Shown: positions 31,850 through 45,750, counted from the stretch's first letter. The stretch: DNA of 64,000 nt from Nageia nagi (GCA_050084985.1 JBITNC010000001.1:41540001-41604000); one strand, 5' to 3'. Translations and numbers: made by a program. Notes: generated from the sequence alone by a model not told the origin.

Positions 31850-33477
31850 ATATATGTTATTGTAATAACTATAAAATTCCAAAAAGAGTTACTCATGTCC
31901 CCTTTTTTAGCAACATGCTTCTACCCATATCCATAAAAATTTAATTATTTTCCAATTTTATTGAGGTGTGTATGTAGTTATAAGTTACCTCTACATATTA
32001 TTATCATAATAAAATTGTATAAATTTACTTGAGTAAAAATCAACATAATAAATCCTTAAAGCCTTTATTTTACATCCATATTTATTCTTTATAAAGGATT
32101 TCAAACTCTTCAAGGCATTTAGAGTCCTATATTTATGTTTTAAAAACTAGACCTAACACTTCTATGAAAATCATCAATAAGAGTAATGAAATAAGATAAC
32201 ATGACTAACATTTTGATTGGGATTAGTACAAAAATATAAAATATATTTATTGTAGTAGGTATGAGGTCCTCTATATTATCCCTATAAGAAACCTCTCTCT
32301 AGGATGCTTTATTTTAACACATCCCTCACAAACTCTTTTGTTATAATCAACTTTATTAAGACAACAAACTAGTTTTTGGGAATTCAATAACCTCAAACAT
32401 TAAAAATTTAAATGACTATATCTTAAGTGCCATTGTTCCATAACTAGCTCTTATTCTTAGTTGTAATATTTTATAAAATAACCACCTTGAGTTCCAAACA
32501 TTAAAGGGAATATTTAGTTGCTTAATATTAGAATTATGATGAAAAATTTCTTCCTCTAGTTTTCTAATAGATGATGTATTTCTTGCTATAAGATTTATAT
32601 ATTTATAGTTTCCTTCATAAATATTCCCTCCATGAACAAATTATGCTTAAGACCAAGTGTATAGTAAATATCATGAACATTATTTTTCTATCTTTTATTT
32701 TCACCTCCACCACATCTTGGGTAAGAACATTTATAGGCTTACTAGATCCCCAAGCTTAATCTTTATCTATGACATGATTGAGGAATCCAAATCAATAAAT
32801 AGTATCTCTTGAATATTATTATCAGCCATGTTATAAGATAAGAACAAGTTGATTTTAGTATCCCTATTCTCATTAATATGATTCATTAATATAATTTTCT
32901 CTTTTTTCCTTCATTAGATACATTAACTCTAATTTATTTCAAAATATCCATACCTCTTGTAATGATAGCATTGAATATTCCTTTTATCACTCCTTTCTCT
33001 TCCTCTACCAAGAGCTCTTATGTCACCTTCTCCTTTGAAACAATTCTGATTTTTGCTTTCCCCTTTATGTTATACTTATTCATGTGTCTTTGTACTAATG
33101 TCATCAATCCTTGAGATAATCTTACATTATAGGAAAAAAGCCTTTTAAACACTCTCACTAAAGGCATGTCTCAGTATCTCCTTATGAGATAGAAGAGAAT
33201 CAATAAGATAATCGAACTCTAATATTGTCAAATTCTCTCCTCAATGATAATGGTAACATGGCCCATCTTGGTATGAGTGTTCTTAATCCTTTGTCAACAT
33301 GAACTTTATTCTCCATCCTTTCTCCAAGAGTGATCATTTGTTGATAACATCCTTTACTATAACATAATATATATTCATGTGAATCCTCAAGTTCTTAAAC
33401 ACCCTCTTCAAGGTCTACAATTTGACCACCCTATGAATCCCTTAGTAAGCCTCTTATAATGCATTCCAACCAAGTTG
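31850..33477 (-). pseudogene. Old copia gag(UBN2)-integrase remnant, split by the CACTA insertion
   Basis: Minus strand gives WNAL*EAY*G...VVKL*TLKR (33400-33470), LRTLIPRW...LTILEFDYLIDSLLSH (33180-33290), WHLRYSHLN (~32407-32432), VCEGC (~32318-32333) and YFITLIDDF (~32167-32195). Confidence 0.75.
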
Positions 33478-34339
33478 CACTACTATATTAAACCCAATTT
33501 GTGTCCTTTTTTATGTCAGATCTCTTTGTTATTTTTTTTAAAAAACTTTTCCTAGTTTTTTGATGCAGAAAAGGATGCAAACTACAATACCAAAATTTGC
33601 ATCTTTTTGGCATACTTTTTGCTTTATTTTTTGCATCATTTTTTTACATCTAAAGGTGTCTAAATTTGCATCCAAATTTGTGTCTCAAGGTATCTTTTTT
33701 TGCATCCTTTATTTGCATCAAAAGGGGTCAAAAATTGAATTCTTTTTTGCTTCCAAAAGGGTCTTTTTTTTCATTAGATTTTCCTGCATTGCATCACTAA
33801 TTATGTCCACAACTACATCATTTTTGTCTAAAAATTATATTAAAAAATTGATTATTAATATTTAATATTATTTTTTCCATTTCCATTGAATCTTCAATCA
33901 TATGTAAAAATAATATGCCAATTTCACCAATCATATGAAAAAATAATACGTGAATCATATGCACACCAAAATAATATGCTAATTGTATGCTGCACCTATT
34001 TTGATACGCAATCGTACACCAATTGTATGCCAAAATAATATGCTAATAATATTATGTAAAAATATGATAAAAATGGGTAAAAATATGCTAAATTATGTTA
34101 AAATATATATTCCAAAATATGGGTTGACAAAACCATGATAACATCCACATCAAATTATTTTGAAATAACATATATATAGACATTTGAATACACCAAAAAT
34201 GCTATATATATACATAAAAATATGTCAAAGTGATATACACGTTTGTGTTAATACATCCACATGATATCTCAAAAATGATAAAATGATATTATCTACATCA
34301 TGAGTATAAATTGATATTACAACTACTAGTTCGTAGTAT

Positions 34340-35970
34340 CAATATCATTACTAGATCTAGATTTAGTACCTATAGACTCACTACTAGTACCTGACTCACT
34401 ACTTGATCCACTACCTGAGCCACTATGTGACCTACTATTATCTGAGCCATTATAATGACTACTCCCTACCATGCTAGGTTGACATACTGGCTCACTATAT
34501 GCCCTACTAGTATGTGTTTACTTATCATAAAAAATCATTGAATCTTACATCTAGGGTAGATGAAGAATCACCCTCCTCTAATGCATCCACCTATGATGCA
34601 CCCCCTTGCGATGTTGCCCCCTGCAATGCAATACCCATCTGTAAATAATAATAGAATAAATATTAGTGTGTGTATAATCATACTTATGAAACATATGTAT
34701 CACCTACAAGAAATTCATGATATGCCTTTATTAATTAAAATAATAGAATTTACTTACAACAGCATTCAACATGTCCCACAGGGATTGTAATCATATGTAA
34801 TGCCATATTGGCATTCATTCTCATTAGGAAATTGATTGAAATCTCTCAACTATAAAAAATGTTAATTAGTACTATATTAAAAACCATTTACCTATATCAT
34901 TTAAAATCATTGCATGCAGTAAATATACTTACAAATCAGACTTACATAGTCTTCACCCCTCCACTTTCTATTCGATGCATAATACTATGACCCAATTTGG
35001 CAAGTCAGGACTTTGATGATTTTTCTTGTGGTGTATCCAAGCCTTCAAATTTCATTTTTTTTCCTTGGATAATTTCTTTAGTAGCATCTTCCAAACCATT
35101 TTATGAAATAGTTAATTAGTATTATGTTAAAAAAATAAAATATATATGTTCAAATAATAAATATGGATGATAATATTGATCCATATATACCTTCTTATGG
35201 ACGTAAATTGGTTTTGTGCTAGTGTTATTTGGTTAGTGGGAAGTTTTATCACTTTTATTTTCACATGATCTATAACCATTTTTAGATTCAAGCTTGCCTA
35301 CTAGATCACTTTCTTCTTGCTCCACCCTTCACTAAATTCATGTTTCAAGTTTGTTATTATTCTCTACTTTGCTGTAAAAATATAAATTATAGTAAATTAG
35401 TTTGTCTCTTGAAATATTAAATTAACAAAAGCAAAACATACATACCAAAAAATGATGCAAAAAATAAAAACAACTAGATACCAAAGTCATCTTGTTTCTT
35501 CCATGGCTTGTTAAGGGTTTGTATAAATTCTATTATTACAACATTCTGGAGGGATTTGTAAAATAGTTTACTTAAAAAATAGTTGAAATCATATTAGTAA
35601 GTGATCAATATACTTCTAATCAATGTGTAAATTTATATTTTTCAAATAAAAACTATTACCATTATCATCTTTTAAGACCTCTCCATTCTTTCTCATAAAA
35701 ATTTGAAGATTTTTAGAGCCTTGAGTCATAGTCAACATAGATTGTTGATTGATCGACTTTGATAAAATAATATATTACATGGATCACATCACAAATATGC
35801 TTCAAAATATAAAATAAAATAATTTTGTATCACTTCTTAATAAATTAACTAATTAATTATAAATAATTACCTGAATGAGCGATGCCATGTCCCTGTAGTG
35901 TGGTAACACCACCTGCTACTCTAGCCTCATCACCCCCAACCATCGACATCAACTCATATTGGCTAAACAA
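34340..35970 (-). pseudogene. Multi-exon gene inside the CACTA, divergent from the transposase; probable TnpA-like (Ptta/En/Spm) accessory gene
   Basis: Repeated minus-strand donors (tacttac/attacc on plus, e.g. ~34751, 34926, 35656, 35866) bound GC-richer exons. HRIESGG*RL.KSDF at ~34930-34975 resembles the H..G.GG motif of TnpA-like proteins. Ser/Gly-rich C-terminal exon at 34370-34520. Confidence 0.5.
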
Positions 35971-36801
35971 TCATTTAGAAAATTTGACACCCCCCTTTAA
36001 CTTCTTTTATTGTTCAATAAATTAATAAAATAAGTGATTACATTTCTTACTTAATGAAATATATATAGTATTATTTAAAATTGTGTTGATATTACATAAT
36101 ACATATGGATACTTACAAGTGGTTTTTTATTTTGAAATTTCATCCTTCGCTTTTTATGCATCCTTTTCTTTTGATTTTCTTTTTTCCTTATAATGTTATT
36201 TAGTAAACTTTAGGGGGAATTTGAAAAACCCTAGCATATGAAATTAACTTTCAATTTTAGTAGGCATTATTGATAGTATATAGTCAAAATTTAGAGAGAA
36301 TTCCAAAAACCCTAGCTTTTTTAGTTTAAATTCATGAGAATTAAAAAAAATCTATTATTTTTAAGTGTAAATTCATGGGAAATTGAAATATGTAAGTAAA
36401 AATCTACATACCTTGTGAAAATTAGGAATAATGCAGATGAATTTGCAAGAAATCCTTTCTCCCACAAAATGCAAAACCTTATGAATAAACATACCAAAAA
36501 ATTAAAAAATAAGTTAAAATAGAGTGAAATCAGGTATAAATCAAGTTATAATTTAATGAAATGAGCTATAAAGGAACTTACTTGATGCTTTACCACTGGA
36601 AATCAAATTTTGTATCTCCTTTGACCAAGAAATGGGTATTAGGAAAGTGATAGGTAGCCCTACCTTTTACTTTTTAATTTTTTAGTGTAATACAACACAA
36701 AAAAGGATGCAAATTTGGGTGCATACTTTTTTGCATCCAAAAACGCCCATTTTGAAAAAAAATAAAAAAATCAAAATTTTAAGTTAAAATCATTATTCTT
36801 C

Positions 36802-37207
36802 AGGTTAGTCATTAGGGTTTGCGTTATTGGTTAGGGTTACTATTAGGGTGAATGTTAGGGCTAATGGGTAAGGTTAGGCTTAGTGGTTAGGGTTAGTGTT
36901 AATGGTTAGGATTTAGGGTCAAGGTTAGGGTTAACATTAGCATTAGGGTACTTAATGGTTAGGGTTAGGGTTAATGGTTAGGATTAAGGTTGGAGTTAGG
37001 GTACTTAATTAGTGGTTAGGGTTAGGGTTAATGGTTAGATTAGGGTTAGGGTTAATGGTTTGGGTTATTAGTGGTTAGGGAAGTATTAGTGATCAAGGTT
37101 AATGGTTAGGGTTAGGCTTAATGGTTAGGGTTAATGTTAATGGTTTAGAGTTAGGGTTAGGGTTAGGGTTAGTGTTAGGGTACTTAGTGGTCAAGTTTAG
37201 GGTTAGG
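36802..37207 (+). repeat. Degenerate telomere-like (TTAGGG-based) array 1
   Basis: Many GGTTAGGG/TTAGGGTTAGGG units interspersed with ttaatgg and ttagtgg variants. Confidence 0.95.
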
Positions 37208-37550
37208 AAGGGAAATGCATAGTGGCTATTTATTGTAAAGTAGCTATTTTTTAATATTTTTAATTTGCTATTTTTATTCTCATTGGCCTAAGCCCAAGTA
37301 GCCTAATTGTTTTGGATTTTTTTTCTTGGTTAGTTAGCCAAAATTTTATAACTTCAAAGTATTTTTTATATAAATTAGCCAAATATAACCCCCACCATAT
37401 TCATACCTTATTCCCTATATTTTATAAATATTTTCAATTTTTCCAAGTGAATTGACTATTGGACATAAGTTTTCTATGAAAAAGATTGCATATCTAAAAG
37501 AAAATAAGACCTATTATAAGAGGAGAAGATAAGGGAATTGTTACAAAAGA

Positions 37551-38147
37551 AAAGTGACTTATTATAGAAGAAAAGTTACTTGTTACTAAAGATGAGCATC
37601 TTTTTACTAAAGATGAGACACTTGTTACTAAAGATGAGTATCTTGTTACTGAAGACAAATGACTTATTATTGAAGTTGAGCAACTTGTTACTGAAGATGA
37701 GTGACTTGTTACTATTGATGAAAAAATTGTTGCTAAAGATGAGAAAATTGTTATTGAAGATGACTGACTTGTTAGTGAGTATCAAAGTCTATTTAACTAA
37801 ACATGAGTAACTTGTTACTATAGATAAGTGACTTGTTACTGCAAACAAGTGACTTGTTACTATAAATAAGTGACTTGTTAATAAAGATGAGAAACTTGTT
37901 AATGAATATGATCATCTTGTTACTGAAGATGAGTGACTTGTTACTAAATATGAGTGACTTATTACTGAATATGAGTGGCTTGTTACTAAAGATGAGCAAC
38001 TTATTACTCAAGATGAGTGACTTGTTATTAAAGATATGCAAGTTGTTACTAAAGTTGAGCAACTTTTTTACTAAATACCAATGACTTATTATTGAAGAGG
38101 AATAACTTGCTACTAAAGATAAGCAACTTGTTGTAGAAGATGAGCAT
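37551..38147 (+). repeat. 21-bp minisatellite, ~28 copies, consensus ~ACTTGTTACT(A/G)AAGATGAG(TG/CA)
   Basis: Visible 21-nt period. Produces the heptad ORFs LLLKMSD and SNKSLIF in the ORF track. Confidence 0.95.
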
Positions 38148-38380
38148 TAAATCAGTATCAAGATGAACATTTGATATAAACTAATATTTCAAAATCACTT
38201 GTAATTTTTACCTCTCTTAGAAAATGATATCAACTACTAAATTTTTTATAACAAAGTTCTTCAAAATTTAAAATATCACCATTGCTTCTATGATATTTTA
38301 TAAAAAAATTGCCAAGATTTTGAAATTATTTCACCAGTATTTTATTTATTTTGATTCACCAAAAATCCTTACACATAACC

Positions 38381-38834
38381 TTGGGGTTAGGATTAGGGTT
38401 AGAGTTAGGGTACTTAATTAGTTGTTAGGGTTACTATTAGTGGTTAGGTTAAGGTTAGCATTAGGGTTAGTGGTTAGGGTTAACATTAATGACTAGGAGC
38501 AAGGTTTGGATTAGCAATTAGGAATTGAGTTAGGTTAGGTTTAACATTAATGGGTAGGAGTTAAGGTTAGGGTTAATGGTAAGGGTTAGGGTTAGGGTTA
38601 ATGGTTAGGGTTAGGGTTAGAGTTAGGGTACTTAATTAGTTGTTAGGGTTAGTGGTTACATTAGGGTTAGTGTTAGGGTTACTGGTTAGGGTTATTAATT
38701 AGGGTTAGCATTAATAGCTAGGAGTTAGGGCTTGGGTTAGCAATTAGGAATTAAGTTAGGGTTAGGGTTAATAGTAATAGGGTTAGTATAAAGGTATTTA
38801 GTGGTTAGGGTTAATGGTTAGGTTAGGGTTAGTG
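38381..38834 (+). repeat. Degenerate telomere-like (TTAGGG-based) array 2
   Basis: Same unit set and strand as array 1, e.g. agggttagggttagggttaatggttagggttagggttagagttaggg at ~38582-38627. Confidence 0.95.
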
Positions 38835-39090
38835 TCTCTACCCATAATAATAAATCCTAAAAGAACTTTGATTGATGATGTATCTTCTATTGCATAGAAT
38901 GTATATCAACATTTTATATTTGTAGTTGAAAGTTTTTTACTTCTTTAATATTTCTAATTCTAAAAGTAAACATTTTTCTTGTGTGTTTTTTATTTGGTAT
39001 AGGATTGAAAATTTATAGATTATTATTATTCATGTACTAATCTCTTTTTTTCGTTAAATTGTAAAACAAGTTAGTGACTTGGCTTATATA

Positions 39091-40519
39091 ATGCCACCAA
39101 GGTGAAGTAGTGATGTATCATCAAATTTAGATATTCATATGCCACTACCTCTATGTTAGAGAGTTGTTAGGATTGATGTGTCATCTAATTCATAAGATTT
39201 TCCTACACCAGTTACTAAGAGGTCAAGGAGTGATGTGTCATATGATTCAGAGGAGTTTCCCCCACCAGCTATTAGAAGGTCAAGGAGTGATGTGTCATCT
39301 AATTTAGATGCATTTTTTGCACTAGTTATTAGGAGGCCAAGGAGTGATGTATCATCTAATTTAAAGTTTAAGATATTTCCTATAGGTCCTATGAGGAGGA
39401 GTGATGTTTCATCAGATGAAGATGAGGTAAGTCTAATGTTATTATGTAAGATGTAGATAGAAATGTAAGATAATCTAAGTTCTCACTTTCATGCATGATA
39501 TTATTTGTAATATTTAGCTTTATTTTATTGCTAATGTTGTAGGAACAAAATGTATAAAGTATTAATGATTCATCATCATTAGAAGATGATGATTCCTATG
39601 AGGTAATTAATTAGGATCAATATTTTTTTTTTTTTTTATTCTTATATATTTAATGATATCAAATAAAACTAAATAAAATCAATATGTACATCCAGAAGAT
39701 GAAGCCAAAATAATGTGTAGGTCCATCAGATGAAGTTAGAGAGATGCATACAAGAATAAGATTTCAAAATGGCTTCATTATTAATTAGAACTAGAGGATG
39801 ATGCACATGAGCAACCATTTTATCTACCAAAGGAGAATGTTCATGATTTGAGTTTGATGTGCATGCCATAAAAGCTACAACTTAAATATCAACATACATA
39901 TGATCATGGGGAATACAATGCATGGTCAGTTGAAATGCCTTTTCCAAAGGGTTATGAAATCTTTCCTTATTTTGGTCATTGATACATGATCAAACCATAT
40001 GAAAAGTGCTCTAGATATGGTTTATTTATACATAGTACTATGGTTGTTACTCCAAGTTCTAAGATAGAACCATTGATGCCATTTTATGGGTCAGTTTACA
40101 TAGCAATGGATTGGAGATAATTAGCATGATATATGTATAATATGTCCACATATGGATTATGTACAAATGCTTTTGATATTCCATATCTTTAGTATTCAAA
40201 ATGCATATACATTGATGGTCAACAAAAAATACAAGGAAACATAGTTGGATACATAAATAGTTTTGTAGGTGAAGAATGAGTACCAAATTATGAATTTCAC
40301 CAATGTAATAATGATAAATAAGACTTCATGGGTAGACAAATGAATAATTATATAGTTATTGTTCCTATTAAAACTCTTAATGTTGGTGATGAGCTACTAG
40401 CTCACTAGAGTTATAAGAGACCTACTCCAAGATGTAAGGAATGAATTTTGGAGTTAGAAGATGATCAAAATGTAAAAATTCATCTAGGACCAAAACCTAA
40501 AAATAAAAATAAAAATTAA
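39091..40519 (+). pseudogene. SET-domain (lysine methyltransferase-like) gene carried by the CACTA, three exons, inactivated by nonsense mutations
   Basis: Exon 1 39091-39426 (ATG MPPR..., RSDVSS repeats, donor GAG|GTAAGT). Exon 2 39543-39602 (AG|...|GT). Exon 3 ~39692-40519 (acceptor apparently mutated) stays in one frame: YMIKP..KCSRYGLFI...PLMPFYGSVY...YGL...IYIDGQQKIQGNIVGYINSFVGEE*VPNYEF...YIVIVPIKTLNVGDELLAH*SY. SET motifs appear in canonical order. 12 premature stops and no frameshift in exon 3. Confidence 0.82.
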
Positions 40520-40892
40520 TATATTATTGATGTGTATGAATGGGTGTTTTAATTTGTATATATGGATAATATGTATATTTGGATGTATCAATTTGTTATA
40601 GTTATGGATGTATTAATTTGTTATATGTATGGATGTATCAAATTATATGTATTGATGATTAATTTGTATGGATGTATCAAATTATATTTACAGAACTATC
40701 ATGTGTATCAGTGGATGTATCAAATTAATTTGCACTTGTTACATTTATTTTTTAATTCTAAATTAATGATTTGTAACAACTAATTTTATAGGAAATAAAT
40801 AGTCATTGTGACCACTCAAGAATGATAACTATTACACCAACATTACCTTGAAATAATGTAAGTAGGAGTGATAAAAAGATACTATAAAAAAT

Positions 40893-43800
40893 ATGGAACC
40901 TAAGAAATATGAAAAGTTTATGTCTGAACCAAATCCAACAACTCTTATTCAAAAACCTATGTGGGATTCAAGTACTAATAATGATGAATTAAGAGAGGAT
41001 AATATTGATAATGATGATGATGTTGATAATTATGTTGATGAAGAAAATAGAATTAATGGTTTACTTGAGTCCCTATATGTTCATGTTGATGATGATGAAA
41101 AAGATGATGATTTAGAAGGGATAGCATGTATAGTGCTTCCAGAACTAAATTATATGAACCAACACAACTCTATTATCGATAATCCTACTTCTAATGAACA
41201 TAAAAGCCAAAAATGGATGGTTAGATACAAGTTTCACTTCTCTTTTGAGGTATGAATTCTATTTTTTTATGATATTTTGATTTTTGATATTTTAATTTTA
41301 ATTAAATTAACTACATATAATGTTTTTTAATTAGTATTAGAGGTTACTAAAAGAAAATTTATTTCCAAGTGATAATGTCATCCCAAATTCATGCAAAAAA
41401 GCATGTGACATTATGAAGGATGTAGGGTTCGAGTATAATTCATACCATGCATGTATTAATGCTTGCATATTATATAAAAGAGAATAATATGATACAAAGA
41501 TTGAATGTCCAATGTCTAAAGAATCAAGATACAATGAAACATGAAAAAAACCTCCAAATCAAGTTATTCATGTAATGCCAATCCTTCCTAGGTTGATGCA
41601 AATATTCTAGTGTAAGTCACTTGTAGAGTTAATGGATTAGAATACAAGAAATAGAAGTGAAGAAGGTGTGTTGTGTATACTTGAAGATAGTGAAGTAATG
41701 AAACATATAGAGGAGAAGTGACCTGAAAAAAATTTAAGGATGAACCTAGGAGTGTTAGATTAGGTTTAGCAATGGGTGGTGTTGATCCATTTTTGAACCA
41801 AACATCTATTTATTCATGTTGGCCTATTGTTATAATCAATTATAACATATCTTTGTGGATGTTTATAAGAAAGAGCATTTGATATTGGATATTATATTCC
41901 ATGGATTGAAATAGGTTAAACACATGGATGTCTACCTTAAACCAATAATTGACGAGTTGCAACTCTTGTGGAAAGGAGTTCAAATGTATGATATAAGTAG
42001 ACCTATCAATAAGAGGTCATTTAAATATTATAGCATACTATGTTGGACTATACATGATTATCTAGGGCTTTCTATTTATGCATGTATGCATATATACATG
42101 AGTATATTTAATTTTTTATAATCATATAAATTATATGCATTATCTAAATAAACTTATCACAAGTCTTTGTACGAAAGGTTGTCATGCTTGTCCATGGTGT
42201 GCAAAAAATATTTCATCAAGATTTTCAAGTAAGATGAGTAAGATGGAATATATTGGTCATAGGAAATATTTTCTAATGGATCATACTTTTTTAAAAAAGG
42301 GAGCCTATGTTCTAGTAGATAAAACCCCTATTCCTATTTACGAAGCTCCTATGAGTTGGTTCATAAAGTACCAATAATGTGTGGAACATGTTAGACAAAG
42401 AGCTTGTGATGAAGGTATTGCATTAGGATCAGATGATGAGATTATTGTTGAAAAAAATGATTTACTAGAAGGTGAAATATAATACAGTATAATATATTTG
42501 TAATATGTTTATTATTTTGAAAATATATAATGTTTATTATGAATTGGTTGCATGTTTTTTAGGAATGAACAAATTATCAATATTTTATACACTAGAATAT
42601 TGGAAGGAGTTGTTGGTGACACATTTAATGGATCCTATGCATATTGTAAAGAATGCTGCAACTTCTTTGTATCAATATATTACAAACAAAGAAGTAAATA
42701 CTGATGCCATGAGAAATAACTTAAAATATATTAAGAAAATGAGATCTTTATGGATAACTTACAATCAAGATAGAAAAAAGTACTTATGAAAACATGGATT
42801 ATGAAAAATGATGACATGGAAAAGTTACACAAATGTATTCAAAATATCAAAACACTAACATATTATGGATCATCTCTAAGAAGTGTATTCAATGCTGATG
42901 GTAAAATCACAAGATTCAAGACTCATGATTACCATAACTTCATGAAGGTATTGATATCATATTATATTTTTCACATTTTCCATAAAAATAAAAATATTTT
43001 CCATATTTATGCCCATACTTTTTGTAGCATATTTTTCCAATTGCAATTTGTGGATGTGGGGTCTACTTGTTGATCTCAGACATGCAATCAATCAACTATC
43101 ATTATTTCTAAGGTATGTTATGTTATAGTATGGCTCCATGAAAAATAATATAGCATGCATTTATTCTTATTTTCTAATATTTTATGCATTTTGACATGCA
43201 ATATTTTGACAATATTATATTTTCATGAACAAGTGGCTATATTCAAAGGAGATACATGTGGCTACAATAGATCAATGGCATAGAGAGATTGTTGAAATTA
43301 TCTGCAAATTAGACATAAAAGTGCACCTATTGATCCACCTAGTAGATGATACTGATATTGTAGGTGTTATGAGTATTAAAAATATATTTTTATGGAGAGA
43401 TTTTTAAAAGTGCTAAAGGGATTTGTTAGACAACATTCACGACTAGAAGGATCTATGGGTGAGGAATACATTGTACAGGAATCATTTTTTTATGCAAGTG
43501 AGTATCTATTCCAAATAGATCCTTCTATCCCAAATATGTGGAGTGCAGATAAAGATAATGAGAAATTAGAAGGGAAGGTCTTAGAAACATATAGAACACC
43601 GTATTCTCTTAAAGGTATTAACTATGTTTTAGATATGTACAAGCATTTTGGATATATAAATTTTATAAATGCTTAATTACTAGCTAACAAGTTTGTATTA
43701 TGGTATTATGAATTTATAGATTATGAGCTTCAGGAATCTATAAATCAATTTATAATGATGCATTATGCATGTTGCAAAAAGTAGATCGAATTGTACAAAA

Positions 43801-44566
43801 CTAAAAGAAAGGAAATTGAACAAGATGTGCCTTATTTCATAGACAGAATCAAAGGGTTACATCTAGTCTACTTGAAAATCTAAGAGAGGAAAATTGGTCA
43901 CAAGAATGTCCAAGGTCATGGATGAAGAATGAAATTGAAATGAAACAACAAGCTACATGAGGAAAAATAGATGAAGATGATGAAAATGCATTAAATATCA
44001 CTATAAGATGTAAGTTTAAGGTAATTATTTTTATTAATATTTTTTATAAAACTTCAATTTTCATGTAAATATGTGTAAGCACTTATAACATTTTTCATGT
44101 AAATATGTGCAGGCACTATCTTTCCTTGCAATGTGGGCATATGGTCAACACTTCAGAAAAGAAAAGAACGACGAGAGAAGAATGACATTTGATTGTGGAG
44201 TGATGGCTGATTTTGATCAAGAAATTCATGCAAGTTCAAGAGATAGGAAAATTAAAATATGTTGAAAAAATTCAAGAAATTATACAATTAGATTATAGGT
44301 CATTTCAATATGTGATATTTAAATGTAAGTGGTTTCACACACTCGATAGAAGAATAGTCTTGCATGATAAACCTAGTGATTACTTTACAATCGACTCCAC
44401 ATGCATTTTACGTGACAACAAAGAGCTTTATATTTTACTACAACATTGCAATCAAATATATTTCATCCCTGATGTTGATGATGATAAAAAGTCATTTGTA
44501 ATTGAATGTAATCCTAGAGGAAAACATACTATACATCTTGATGATGAAGAAGATAATTCGCAATGA
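40893..44566 (+). pseudogene. CACTA transposase (TnpD-like: Transposase_21 + DUF4218 + DUF4216), intron-containing
   Basis: YHACINACILY...ECP (~41440-41510). RLGLAMGGVDPF...YSCWPIVIINYN (~41757-41848). MDVYLKPIIDELQLLWKGV (41924). KGCHACPWC. HLMDPMHIVKN. KTHDYHNFM. KVHLLIHL. MERFLKVLKGFVRQ..R.EGSM.E.Y (43392). IQEIIQLDY...FKCKWF (44213). Confidence 0.95.
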
Positions 44567-45480
44567 TAATGTTGTAATTGATATGCTTTTCACTAGTATC
44601 TTGAACTTTTCATGTGTATATCTTTCTCATTGCTTATGGTATTGACAATATTATTTATTTTTAACTCCATACTTACAATTGCAAATGGTATATTTACAAA
44701 AAGAGCACAATGGAATAATGTAGATGGGCTGGAACTGAATTATTTGCTTATAAAATGATAAGGCAACTATGAACTCATGATATAGTGATAAATTAAGAAA
44801 ATTATATTAACTTATATAATTATTTAATATGGAAATGAAAAGGTTCGTTACAAGTCGATGGTATCTTACAACACCAATTCACTCCATCTTCAAAGGAAAA
44901 ACATGAGCAATTATTTTTCATCATTTGAATATATAGATCATGCAACATCAAATTATGTAAAAATTTAAGAGAATCATTCAAGTACAATTAATCATTACAA
45001 GCTGTGTGTAGGAAACATTAACGACCATATTTGCATCATGTATCTTGTAAAATAATTCTCCTACTTTTATAATGTGTATTTTCTTATATTTTGCATTATT
45101 TTCCACCAAATTTCGAAAAGTTTAATGTGACATACATCCATGGTAGTCGAATTTCATAATAAAAATGATTGCAAATTTTTTTTCCTTGTTTAAGTTTTTT
45201 CGATTCAAATTGGTGTTTGAATTTGCATCTTAATACCTTGGGCATTCTTGAAAAAACTTTTTTTTTCCACGCAATGCTAAATTTTGATGCAAATTTTATG
45301 TCCAAATTTGCATCCTTTTTTGTATCTAAATTTATGTCCTTTTTTGCATCGAAAAAATTTTAAATTTTGAAAAAACAATTTGACACATGCTGATGTAGGA
45401 GGATGCAAATTTACATCCTTTTTCTTTTTTCATGATTGAAGATGTAAAAAAGGATGCAAATTGGGCTTTTGGTAGTAGTG

Positions 45481-45750
45481 TTGGGTTGATTTGACATTTG
45501 CAATATTTGAAAATAAGCTCTTGTCTAGGGTTGTCTGAATGGGGCAAAGAGTTCTTCTTCTTTACCTCATTTATTTGCTTATCATTTTGAGGAATAATTT
45601 TCCTATTAGCTAGTTCAACATAATCAACTACTATAATTATATCCTCAATATTTTTTTTTGTAAACAACATCCTCATCTTGATGCTTTAGTAGTTATAATC
45701 TTAAGCATTAAACTTTGGAATGGGAATGAATTTATTGTTGTTAACCATAA
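45481..45750 (-). pseudogene. N-terminal gag remnant of the copia interrupted by the CACTA
   Basis: DYNY*SIKMRMLFTKKNIEDIII..DYVE...KKKNSL is the copia gag N-terminus (NY..W.IKM..L). It continues into the WNAL segment left of 33477. Confidence 0.75.

Follow-up and report, generated by a model that had tools for sequence, protein, structure and literature searches.

A fossil CACTA transposon of Nageia nagi with a decayed gene for a putative, remote SET/PR-like domain beside its transposase

Introduction

Can a plant CACTA transposon carry, beside its transposase, a gene of its own with a SET-like domain, and what would such a gene have been for? The question is raised by a 64,000-nt stretch of Nageia nagi DNA, analyzed here as a whole and referred to as the window. 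A first-pass annotation, made from the sequence alone, had placed in it a spliced gene with SET motifs that is interrupted by many stop codons and lies within a CACTA element. Transposon-encoded chromatin factors are rare, examples being VANC in VANDAL elements and TET/JBP in fungal elements. We therefore asked whether the gene and its element are genuine, whether the gene is a property of the transposon family, and how far its likeness to SET domains can be supported statistically.

Materials and methods

Related loci (L001-L005) were collected by a profile scan of JGI metagenome contigs, using an alignment of short fragments as the query. The query for the homology tests was the six-copy protein alignment projected on the codons of the window, with X at every break; this family alignment is shallow (Neff 1.6). 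SET references were retrieved from IMG/VR with a DNA pattern for the motif INHSCxPN, which yielded 54 loci. Pfam verified twenty of the reference ORFs as members of PF00856 (37-83 bits versus a cut-off of 22.4), and 16 viral domains were aligned.

Results

The element and its two genes

The CACTA element occupies 12,003 bp of the window (33478-45480). Its 5' end at 33478 reads CACTACTATATTAAACCCAATTTG, so that the terminal inverted repeat opens with CACTACTA (the CACTA start), and its 3' end at 45480 reads CAAATTGGGCTTTTGGTAGTAGTG, the inverted counterpart of the 5' end. Identical TTG trinucleotides flank the two ends, and a 3-bp target-site duplication is typical of the CACTA superfamily. The layout of the element outside the SET-like gene is as follows.

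33475..33477, no strand: 5' target-site duplication TTG, identical to the TTG at 45481-45483
33478..33512, + strand: 5' terminal inverted repeat (CACTACTATATTAAACCCAATTTG...), after which TTTGCATCC-type subterminal repeats come next
36812..38831, no strand: internal repeat hub 5' of the SET-like gene, consisting of minisatellites around a 21-bp array
40550..40731, no strand: TGGATGTATCAA-type short repeats between the SET-like gene and the transposase
40822..44566, + strand: decayed Tnp2-type (TnpD-like) transposase gene with PF02992, DUF4218 and DUF4216 fragments
45446..45480, - strand: 3' terminal inverted repeat, reverse complement CACTACTACCAAAAGCCCAATTTG...

The repeat hub comprises two blocks of TTAGGG/TTAATGG-type minisatellites (36812-37191 and 38384-38831) with the 21-bp array, repeated 29 times, between them (37526-38144). 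The transposase was recognized from ORF fragments at 41924-44566 (+), which match PF02992 (Transposase_21/Tnp2, E 2.5e-10 and 4.2e-7), DUF4218 and DUF4216. The CACTA ends, the TTG duplication and these matches bear out the earlier statement that the SET-like gene resides inside a genuine CACTA element; as reported, it also precedes the transposase, with both genes on the + strand. Overall, the element is a long-dead member of a high-copy plant CACTA family of the En/Spm type.

Related copies and family abundance

The five related loci are 77-87% identical in DNA to the element in the window. The order of modules (telomere-like minisatellite, SET-like gene, transposase) is repeated in L001-L003 and partly in L004 and L005. 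More precisely, L001 is collinear with window positions 38386-41810, L002 with 39340-44621 and L003 with 39226-42282, while L004 and L005 are rearranged relative to the window. Minisatellites of the repeat hub were found in L001-L004 too.

A much larger number of copies was found among Logan contigs. In each of four runs, labeled as four organisms, between 3,301 and 19,182 contigs matched the region 38900-41400 at a likeness of at least 80%, most of them having less than 95% likeness to the window. With thousands of contigs in four runs, the region is not a single-copy capture. The view that the gene is encoded by the family rather than being a one-off is thus upheld both by these contigs and by the module of the five loci, which is collinear in L001-L003 and partly so in L004 and L005, and the CACTA family with the SET-like gene is very abundant and old. 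Several further sets with copies are air metagenomes, which would fit pollen.

At the protein level, an exhaustive phmmer search with the 45-aa longest stop-free piece (39983-40117) against 1.84 billion representatives returned four fragments, 57-90 aa long, that belong to this gene, all of them unnamed singleton clusters from metagenome or Logan assemblies. Two other phmmer matches of this piece, P0001 and P0003, were rejected as false positives driven by repeats. A word-based search with P0006 gave nothing further, and nothing usable came from querying the atlas with the 45-aa piece. The 64-kb window itself holds no second copy of the SET-like gene. As to RNA support, the runs holding copies are DNA or unclassified, and none is recorded as RNA.

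Exons, splice sites and reading frame

Comparison of the copies led to the following model of the gene, in which 112, 20 and 259 codons add up to a protein of ~391 aa.

39091..39426, + strand: putative exon 1, starting with the ATG at 39091, 112 codons, Ser/Asp/Arg-rich
39427..39542, + strand: putative intron 1 (GT...TAG or CAG), boundaries conserved in other copies
39543..39602, + strand: putative exon 2, 60 nt, 20 codons (EQN..SSSEDDD..E)
39603..39739, + strand: putative intron 2, donor GT at 39603 conserved, two all-copy stops inside
39740..40519, + strand: last exon, revised model, 259 codons and TAA at 40517-40519, with 10 acquired stops

Both the ATG at 39091 and the donor of exon 1 (GAG/GTAAG at 39426/39427, the slash marking the boundary) are kept across copies. 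Exon 1 carries an in-frame tandem repeat of 57 nt (3.4 units, 39169-39361) that encodes RRSRSDVSS-type units. The acceptor and the donor of exon 2 are likewise kept across copies. Indels in exon 2 are mostly multiples of three among the copies, the exception being L005, and in the window this exon has one private TAA.

The last exon had been described as a single frame running through 12 stops. Such a frame exists: the stretch 39695-40507 comprises 271 codons and exactly 12 stops (5 TGA, 4 TAA and 3 TAG). The start originally proposed for this exon, however, had to be moved. All six copies share the stops at 39731 and 39737, and therefore 39695-39739 (~15 codons) was not coding in that frame. 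There are two candidate acceptors for the last exon, TAG/39740, which fits phase 0, and the alternative AATTAG/39789. Because no acceptor other than the TAG at 39737-39739 both joins exon 2 in phase 0 and keeps the last exon free of ancestral stops, we placed the start at 39740; the last exon thus probably begins near this position, as judged from the aligned copies. Its first part is variable, with many indels at 39757-39815 that are not multiples of three and, in the window copy, a private 1-nt deletion near 39770.

The frame 39740-40505 differs sharply from the other two frames of the same six-copy alignment. Of its 255 columns, none is a stop in all copies and one is a stop in the majority, whereas all-copy stops occupy 11 and 18 columns of the other two frames and majority stops 15 and 29, respectively. 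Some 8% of random codons are expected to be stops in DNA of such composition (the window is 68% A+T). The absence of all-copy stops implies that the common ancestor was open in this frame.

Acquired stops and neutral decay

Every copy is broken by stops and frameshifts, the positions of which differ between copies, and no intact copy of the gene was found among the copies examined. The ten stops acquired by the last exon in the window are listed below together with the codons of the other copies.

39782, + strand: TAA in the window, CAA, TTA or AAA in other copies
39869, + strand: TAA in the window, CCA or CAA in other copies
39980, + strand: TGA in the window, AGA or CAA in other copies
40118, + strand: TAA in the window, CAA or AAA in other copies
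40127, + strand: TGA in the window, AGA or TCA in other copies
40190, + strand: TAG in the window, AAG, CCA or AAA in other copies
40277, + strand: TGA in the window, TGG in other copies
40319, + strand: TAA in the window, GAA in other copies
40406, + strand: TAG in the window, TAY in other copies
40442, + strand: TGA in the window, CAA or CAC in other copies

The first-pass annotation had explained most stops by changes of CAA, CGA or CAG, which overstates the case: about 5-6 of the 10 acquired stops fit CAA or CGA, and three are clearly of other types (TGG>TGA, GAA>TAA and TAY>TAG). Among the copies, G>A and C>T together make up 43% of the changes.

Pairwise dN/dS averages 1.27 among copies, with no sign of purifying selection. 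This value is biased upward, since the G>A and C>T decay falls on the first and second codon positions, which are richer in G+C. Variation is lowest at third positions (79% A/T), which have 74 minority bases as opposed to 137 at first and 132 at second positions. The copies drift neutrally after insertion, and dN/dS is uninformative on selection during the active period of the family. The copy in the window makes no functional protein.

SET motifs in the C-terminal domain

Two parts of the last exon are of interest with respect to SET domains.

39983..40195, + strand: region collinear with SET-N/SET-I (xGYGLF, PFxGxVY), conserved among copies
40196..40420, + strand: SET-C-like half (YIDG..GN..GYINS....PN ... 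IVxVPIKTLNVGDELLxHYSY), with statistical support for SET

All motifs that had been pointed out were recovered in place: RYGLF at 40013-40027, PFYGSVY at 40079-40099, YIDG..GN..GYINS..PN at 40208-40288 and GDELLAH*SY at 40385-40414 (the asterisk is a stop). At the presumed position of the GxG loop, the window has RYGLF, and L005 and P0005 have GYGLF. In the SET-C-like half, the window stops replace W (40277), E (40319) and Y (40406).

The motifs that bear on catalysis give a mixed picture. The catalytic-Tyr motif is present as GDELL(A/V)HYSY in L001, L003 and L005 and as DDEILVHYNY in L002; in the window, its first Tyr codon has become the TAG at 40406. The cofactor/pseudoknot motif NH(S)xxPN is not found as such, its His position being occupied by Ser. 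The substitution of NS for NH noted earlier is indeed a feature of the family, as all copies have (I/V)NS except L005, which has INN. In addition, all copies have four extra residues before PN, with the Asn and PN kept. The His-to-Ser change and the four-residue insertion together make catalysis doubtful. To our knowledge, PR domains likewise lack NH. The gene is also devoid of pre-SET and post-SET Cys clusters, in agreement with the initial description.

Tests of SET homology

Direct searches with single pieces were uninformative. Pfam gave no PF00856 match for 15 stop-free pieces of 28-94 aa from the window and other copies; a VID27 match obtained with longer pieces of other copies was sub-threshold and was discarded. 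Neither the stop-free pieces of the window nor a C-terminal tiling profile (A5) matched any PDB sequence. AlphaFold2 models of two stop-free halves had mean pLDDT values of 61.6 and 45.7, which is too low for a fold search.

Profile-profile comparison gave a different result. When the six-copy alignment was compared with the 16 viral SET domains using hhalign, the score was 42.0 (Prob 89%, P 2e-6). The match spans YIDG..GN..GYINS....PN...IVxVPIKTLNVGDELLxHYSY, exactly in the register proposed in the first-pass annotation. For comparison, 150 column shuffles scored 12.9 +/- 2.4 with a maximum of 21.4, and the reversed alignment scored 10.2; the real score is thus ~12 standard deviations above the column shuffles. 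Stop-free pieces (A5) aligned by hhalign to full viral SET ORFs (A6) in the same register (P 2.8e-4, probability 41%).

The signal is unevenly distributed along the domain. The C-terminal half alone gives P 7e-8, whereas the N-terminal half alone scores 9.95, which is at the level of its shuffles (8.4 +/- 1.4). The proposed SET identity was therefore supported for the C-terminal half and received no statistical support of its own in the N-terminal half. In the best local match of the N-terminal half and in the extended alignment, RYGLF and PFxGxVY fall on the GxGlF and xxGE motifs of SET-N. Since the SET references had been fished with INHSCxPN, segments were retested without this motif. The segment following PN reached P 1.9e-6 by itself (score 28.6 versus a shuffle maximum of 14.4), and the YIDG..PN segment with the fishing motif removed reached P 0.001.

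Two further searches were in line with this. The window and L001-L005 were scanned in all six frames with a SET HMM, stops being treated as X (1,296 chunks). The best E-value was 0.0019, and the top six chunks include the frame of the gene in L001, L004, L002 and L003; the window copy was not ranked because three of its key residues are stops. When a stop-free piece of L003 (79 aa) served as the query of a language-model search, 25 of 30 named matches were PF00856 clusters (score 0.91). A PRDM2_PR cluster was at rank 19 with a score of 0.89, and its 169 shared features out of 256 were the most among the matches listed.

Judging by these comparisons, we take the C-terminal half for a genuine SET/PR homologue, albeit a remote one, which may lean toward the PR type. 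As a whole, the domain is probably a complete minimal one of the SET type.

Relation to the transposase gene

The SET frame terminates at the TAA at 40517-40519, a few codons at most from the stops of other copies. The distance from this TAA to the transposase ATG at 40822 is 303 bp. The latter ATG is kept in all four copies compared, and in L001 its equivalent opens a 157-codon ORF into the acidic N-terminus of the transposase. Another ATG of the window, at 40893, heads a 120-aa ORF and is in frame only because of a private 1-nt deletion. Given the stop of the SET frame and a conserved ATG of the transposase's own, the two genes are separate in DNA. Two further sites are conserved, a GTAAGG at 40434 within the SET tail and the acceptor-like TTTTATAG/G at 40791. 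In En/Spm, TnpA and TnpD are made from one transcript via alternative splicing, and by analogy, co-transcription with alternative splicing may have taken place here as well.

Discussion

We consider it likely that the window holds a fossil copy of a high-copy CACTA family whose founder had two genes on one strand, and that the SET-like gene was intact at the time of amplification and decayed neutrally afterwards. The first gene of such a founder would have had ~390 codons in three exons; its product would have combined a Ser/Asp/Arg-rich N-terminus, containing the in-frame repeats, with a highly divergent SET/PR-like domain at the C-terminus. About 300 bp downstream, the second gene would have encoded a Tnp2-type transposase from its own ATG. 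The SET-like gene would have remained intact while the family amplified, and every copy examined would later have decayed, largely through G>A and C>T changes. During the active period of the family, the protein may have served in trans as an accessory factor, either as a lysine methyltransferase or as a non-catalytic SET-fold binding protein, with chromatin/histones or the transposition machinery as its presumed target.

The gene could also have been acquired passively. CACTA elements often capture host gene fragments, and the founder might have picked up a segment of a host SET gene that was then copied along without ever serving the element. Such a passive passenger would agree with a dN/dS of ~1.3 among copies, all of them broken, and with the loss of the His of the cofactor motif. 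Neutral drift after insertion is, however, expected for a passenger and for an accessory gene alike, so it does not discriminate between the two. What a captured fragment would not lead one to expect is a complete gene, from its ATG through conserved splice donors to its stop codon, a last exon with 0 all-copy stops in 255 columns despite an A+T content of 68%, and a fixed place beside the transposase in every copy that spans the gene. Moreover, HMMER finds nothing among ordinary SET proteins and no piece matches the Pfam SET model; this great distance from ordinary SET proteins argues against a recent capture. We therefore regard passive capture as rather improbable. We give still less credence to the notion that the protein is not SET-related at all, being some other CACTA accessory protein whose motifs resemble SET by chance. 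The pieces without Pfam or PDB matches, the non-significant N-terminal half, the uninformative AlphaFold models and the shallow family alignment (Neff 1.6) would all be consistent with it. It would nevertheless have to account for two separate segments that match SET (P 1.9e-6 and P 0.001) and do so in the correct order, for an hhalign score ~12 standard deviations above column shuffles, for an unbiased six-frame scan that picks the frame of the gene in four copies, and for an independent language-model search in which, with every Pfam family open to it, SET/PR clusters come up.

A different arrangement of the same two genes would be a fusion, with the SET exon spliced in frame to the transposase exons to give one SETMAR-like protein. 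The common strand, the spacing of 303 bp, the conserved GTAAGG at 40434 with the acceptor-like TTTTATAG/G at 40791, and the splicing of TnpA and TnpD from one En/Spm transcript are compatible with this. Against it, the SET frame ends at 40517-40519, with stops within a few codons in other copies, and the transposase has its own ATG at 40822, conserved in four of four copies and followed by a 157-codon ORF in L001. A fusion thus seems very improbable.

Returning to the two-gene founder with an accessory SET-like protein, one may ask how far its function can be specified. An autonomous lineage of canonical plant CACTA elements could have encoded an active SET/PR-type lysine methyltransferase, which would have marked the element's own chromatin or a transposition factor and thereby favored its spread. 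We are inclined to doubt this more specific proposal. If there was such a methyltransferase, it was possibly made from the transposase transcript by alternative splicing, as happens in En/Spm, and a related species may still harbor live copies.

Comparison with known systems places the gene at some distance from each of them. The order of motifs, (G)xGLF, xxG, (Y)IDG..GN...IN-x, PN and G(D/E)ELL..Y.Y, is like that of SET (PF00856) and the PRDM PR domain (PF21549). Unlike in SET (PF00856), the His of NH is Ser here, four extra residues precede PN, pre- and post-SET Cys clusters are missing, and Pfam's own model matches none of the stop-free pieces. As for the element, the CACTA termini, the 3-bp duplication, the subterminal repeats, the set of Tnp2, DUF4218 and DUF4216, and the presence of two genes on one strand are all as in plant CACTA/En-Spm elements. 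The difference lies in the gene beside the transposase, which is SET-like instead of being of the TnpA (Transposase_24) or ULP1-protease type, an unusual cargo for a plant transposon. Full-text literature searches returned no report of a SET gene in canonical plant CACTA elements.

SETMAR, a host gene in which a SET exon is fused to a mariner transposase, resembles the present case in that a SET domain adjoins DNA-transposase coding sequence; here, in contrast, both genes are part of a mobile element, the SET-like gene with a stop and the transposase gene with a start of its own. VANC, the anti-silencing protein of VANDAL elements, is not a SET protein. The analogy with VANC of the Mutator-like VANDAL elements would be one of role alone, namely that of a factor acting on the element's own chromatin.

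A parallel among transposons is PAG2 of Plavaka elements (EnSpm/CACTA superfamily) in the red alga Bostrychia, an accessory gene with a SET domain (bioRxiv 10.1101/2025.02.11.637652). In PAG2, a DNA-methylase domain is joined to a SET domain that InterPro recognizes directly, and the gene sits in giant Plavaka elements together with two other accessory genes (bioRxiv 10.1101/2025.02.11.637652). The two cases share a CACTA-superfamily transposon with a SET accessory gene; in Nageia nagi, a small SET/PR-like gene stands alone in a canonical plant Tnp2-type element. SET ORFs have been described in other superfamilies too. HarbingerS is cited in PMC12730594 (for Kojima and Jurka 2014, Repbase Reports) as carrying one, and the SET ORF of proto-Helentron closely resembles Clr4 (CDD E 3e-24; PMC4067079). 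Like the element studied here, HarbingerS and proto-Helentron are DNA transposons with their own SET ORF beside a transposition protein, although they belong to PIF/Harbinger and to the rolling-circle elements, respectively. Unlike the Helentron SET, the domain in our family is detectable only by profile-profile comparison.

The value of the finding is limited by the fact that every copy seen is dead and that the supported homology covers half of the domain. Within these bounds, a SET/PR-like gene as standard equipment of an abundant Tnp2-type CACTA family would extend the theme of transposon-encoded chromatin factors to land-plant CACTA elements, and it has a bearing on how PR-like domains arose outside animals. 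With such a family, one could also ask whether histone marks can be written by a DNA transposon to its own advantage. An active SET/PR methyltransferase, if it did exist in this family, would represent a transposon-borne chromatin writer in seed plants.

Repeats in and around the SET-like gene

The decayed CACTA element bears repeats at both ends, upstream of and within the putative three-exon SET-like gene, and in the spacer that follows it.

Repeats of the element (window coordinates)
33560-33760 and 45290-45470: dense TTTGCATCC / GGATGCAAA subterminal repeats, both element ends
36812-37191: first degenerate TTAGGG/TTAATGG-type minisatellite array, inside the element
37526-38144: 21-bp tandem array, 29 units of AAGATGAGTGACTTGTTACTA, inside the element
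38384-38831: second degenerate TTAGGG/TTAATGG-type minisatellite array, inside the element
39169-39361: in-frame 57-nt (19-codon) repeat, 3.4 units, within exon 1 of the SET-like gene
40550-40731: short TGGATGTATCAA(A/T)TT repeats, spacer from the SET-like stop codon to the transposase start

A perfect 22-nt copy of the subterminal repeat is also found at 36697-36718, inverted relative to 45302-45323. The 21-bp array sits between the two minisatellite arrays, and the SET-like gene begins just downstream of them; a minisatellite of the same type likewise lies upstream of this gene in four related loci from metagenome contigs (L001-L004). The exon 1 repeat codes for RSRSDVSS..FP-type units, the number of which varies between copies (L001 and L003 have one unit fewer). 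Copy number of the spacer repeats differs as well, across L001-L003. By analogy with CACTA subterminal motifs, the spacer repeats might be candidate sites for protein binding.

L004 (1-2516) and the fifth related locus, L005 (1-5767), are rearranged copies. The SET-like gene of L004 is cut short at the window equivalent of 40376, where it adjoins an inverted transposase fragment (42942-43932); L005 holds an inverted 5' part of the gene and two partial 3' parts.

When the longest stop-free piece of the SET-like frame (45 residues) was used as a phmmer query, the top-scoring proteins, P0001 and P0003, matched it in 11 and 6 stretches, respectively. Both are repeat proteins unrelated to the family and were rejected as short-query false positives.

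Transposase start and possible splicing between the two genes

ATG 40822, kept in four copies, is the first codon of the transposase frame (window 40822-41255; L001 3175-3645) and in L001 begins a 157-codon ORF. The window's own ORF is headed by ATG 40893, in-frame solely through a private 1-nt deletion. Two conserved splice-like motifs are located nearby.

40434-40439: conserved GTAAGG, within the SET-frame tail
40784-40792: conserved acceptor-like site TTTTATAG|G, upstream of the transposase ATG

Judging from these two motifs, alternative splicing could take place from one gene to the other, a situation comparable to that in En/Spm.
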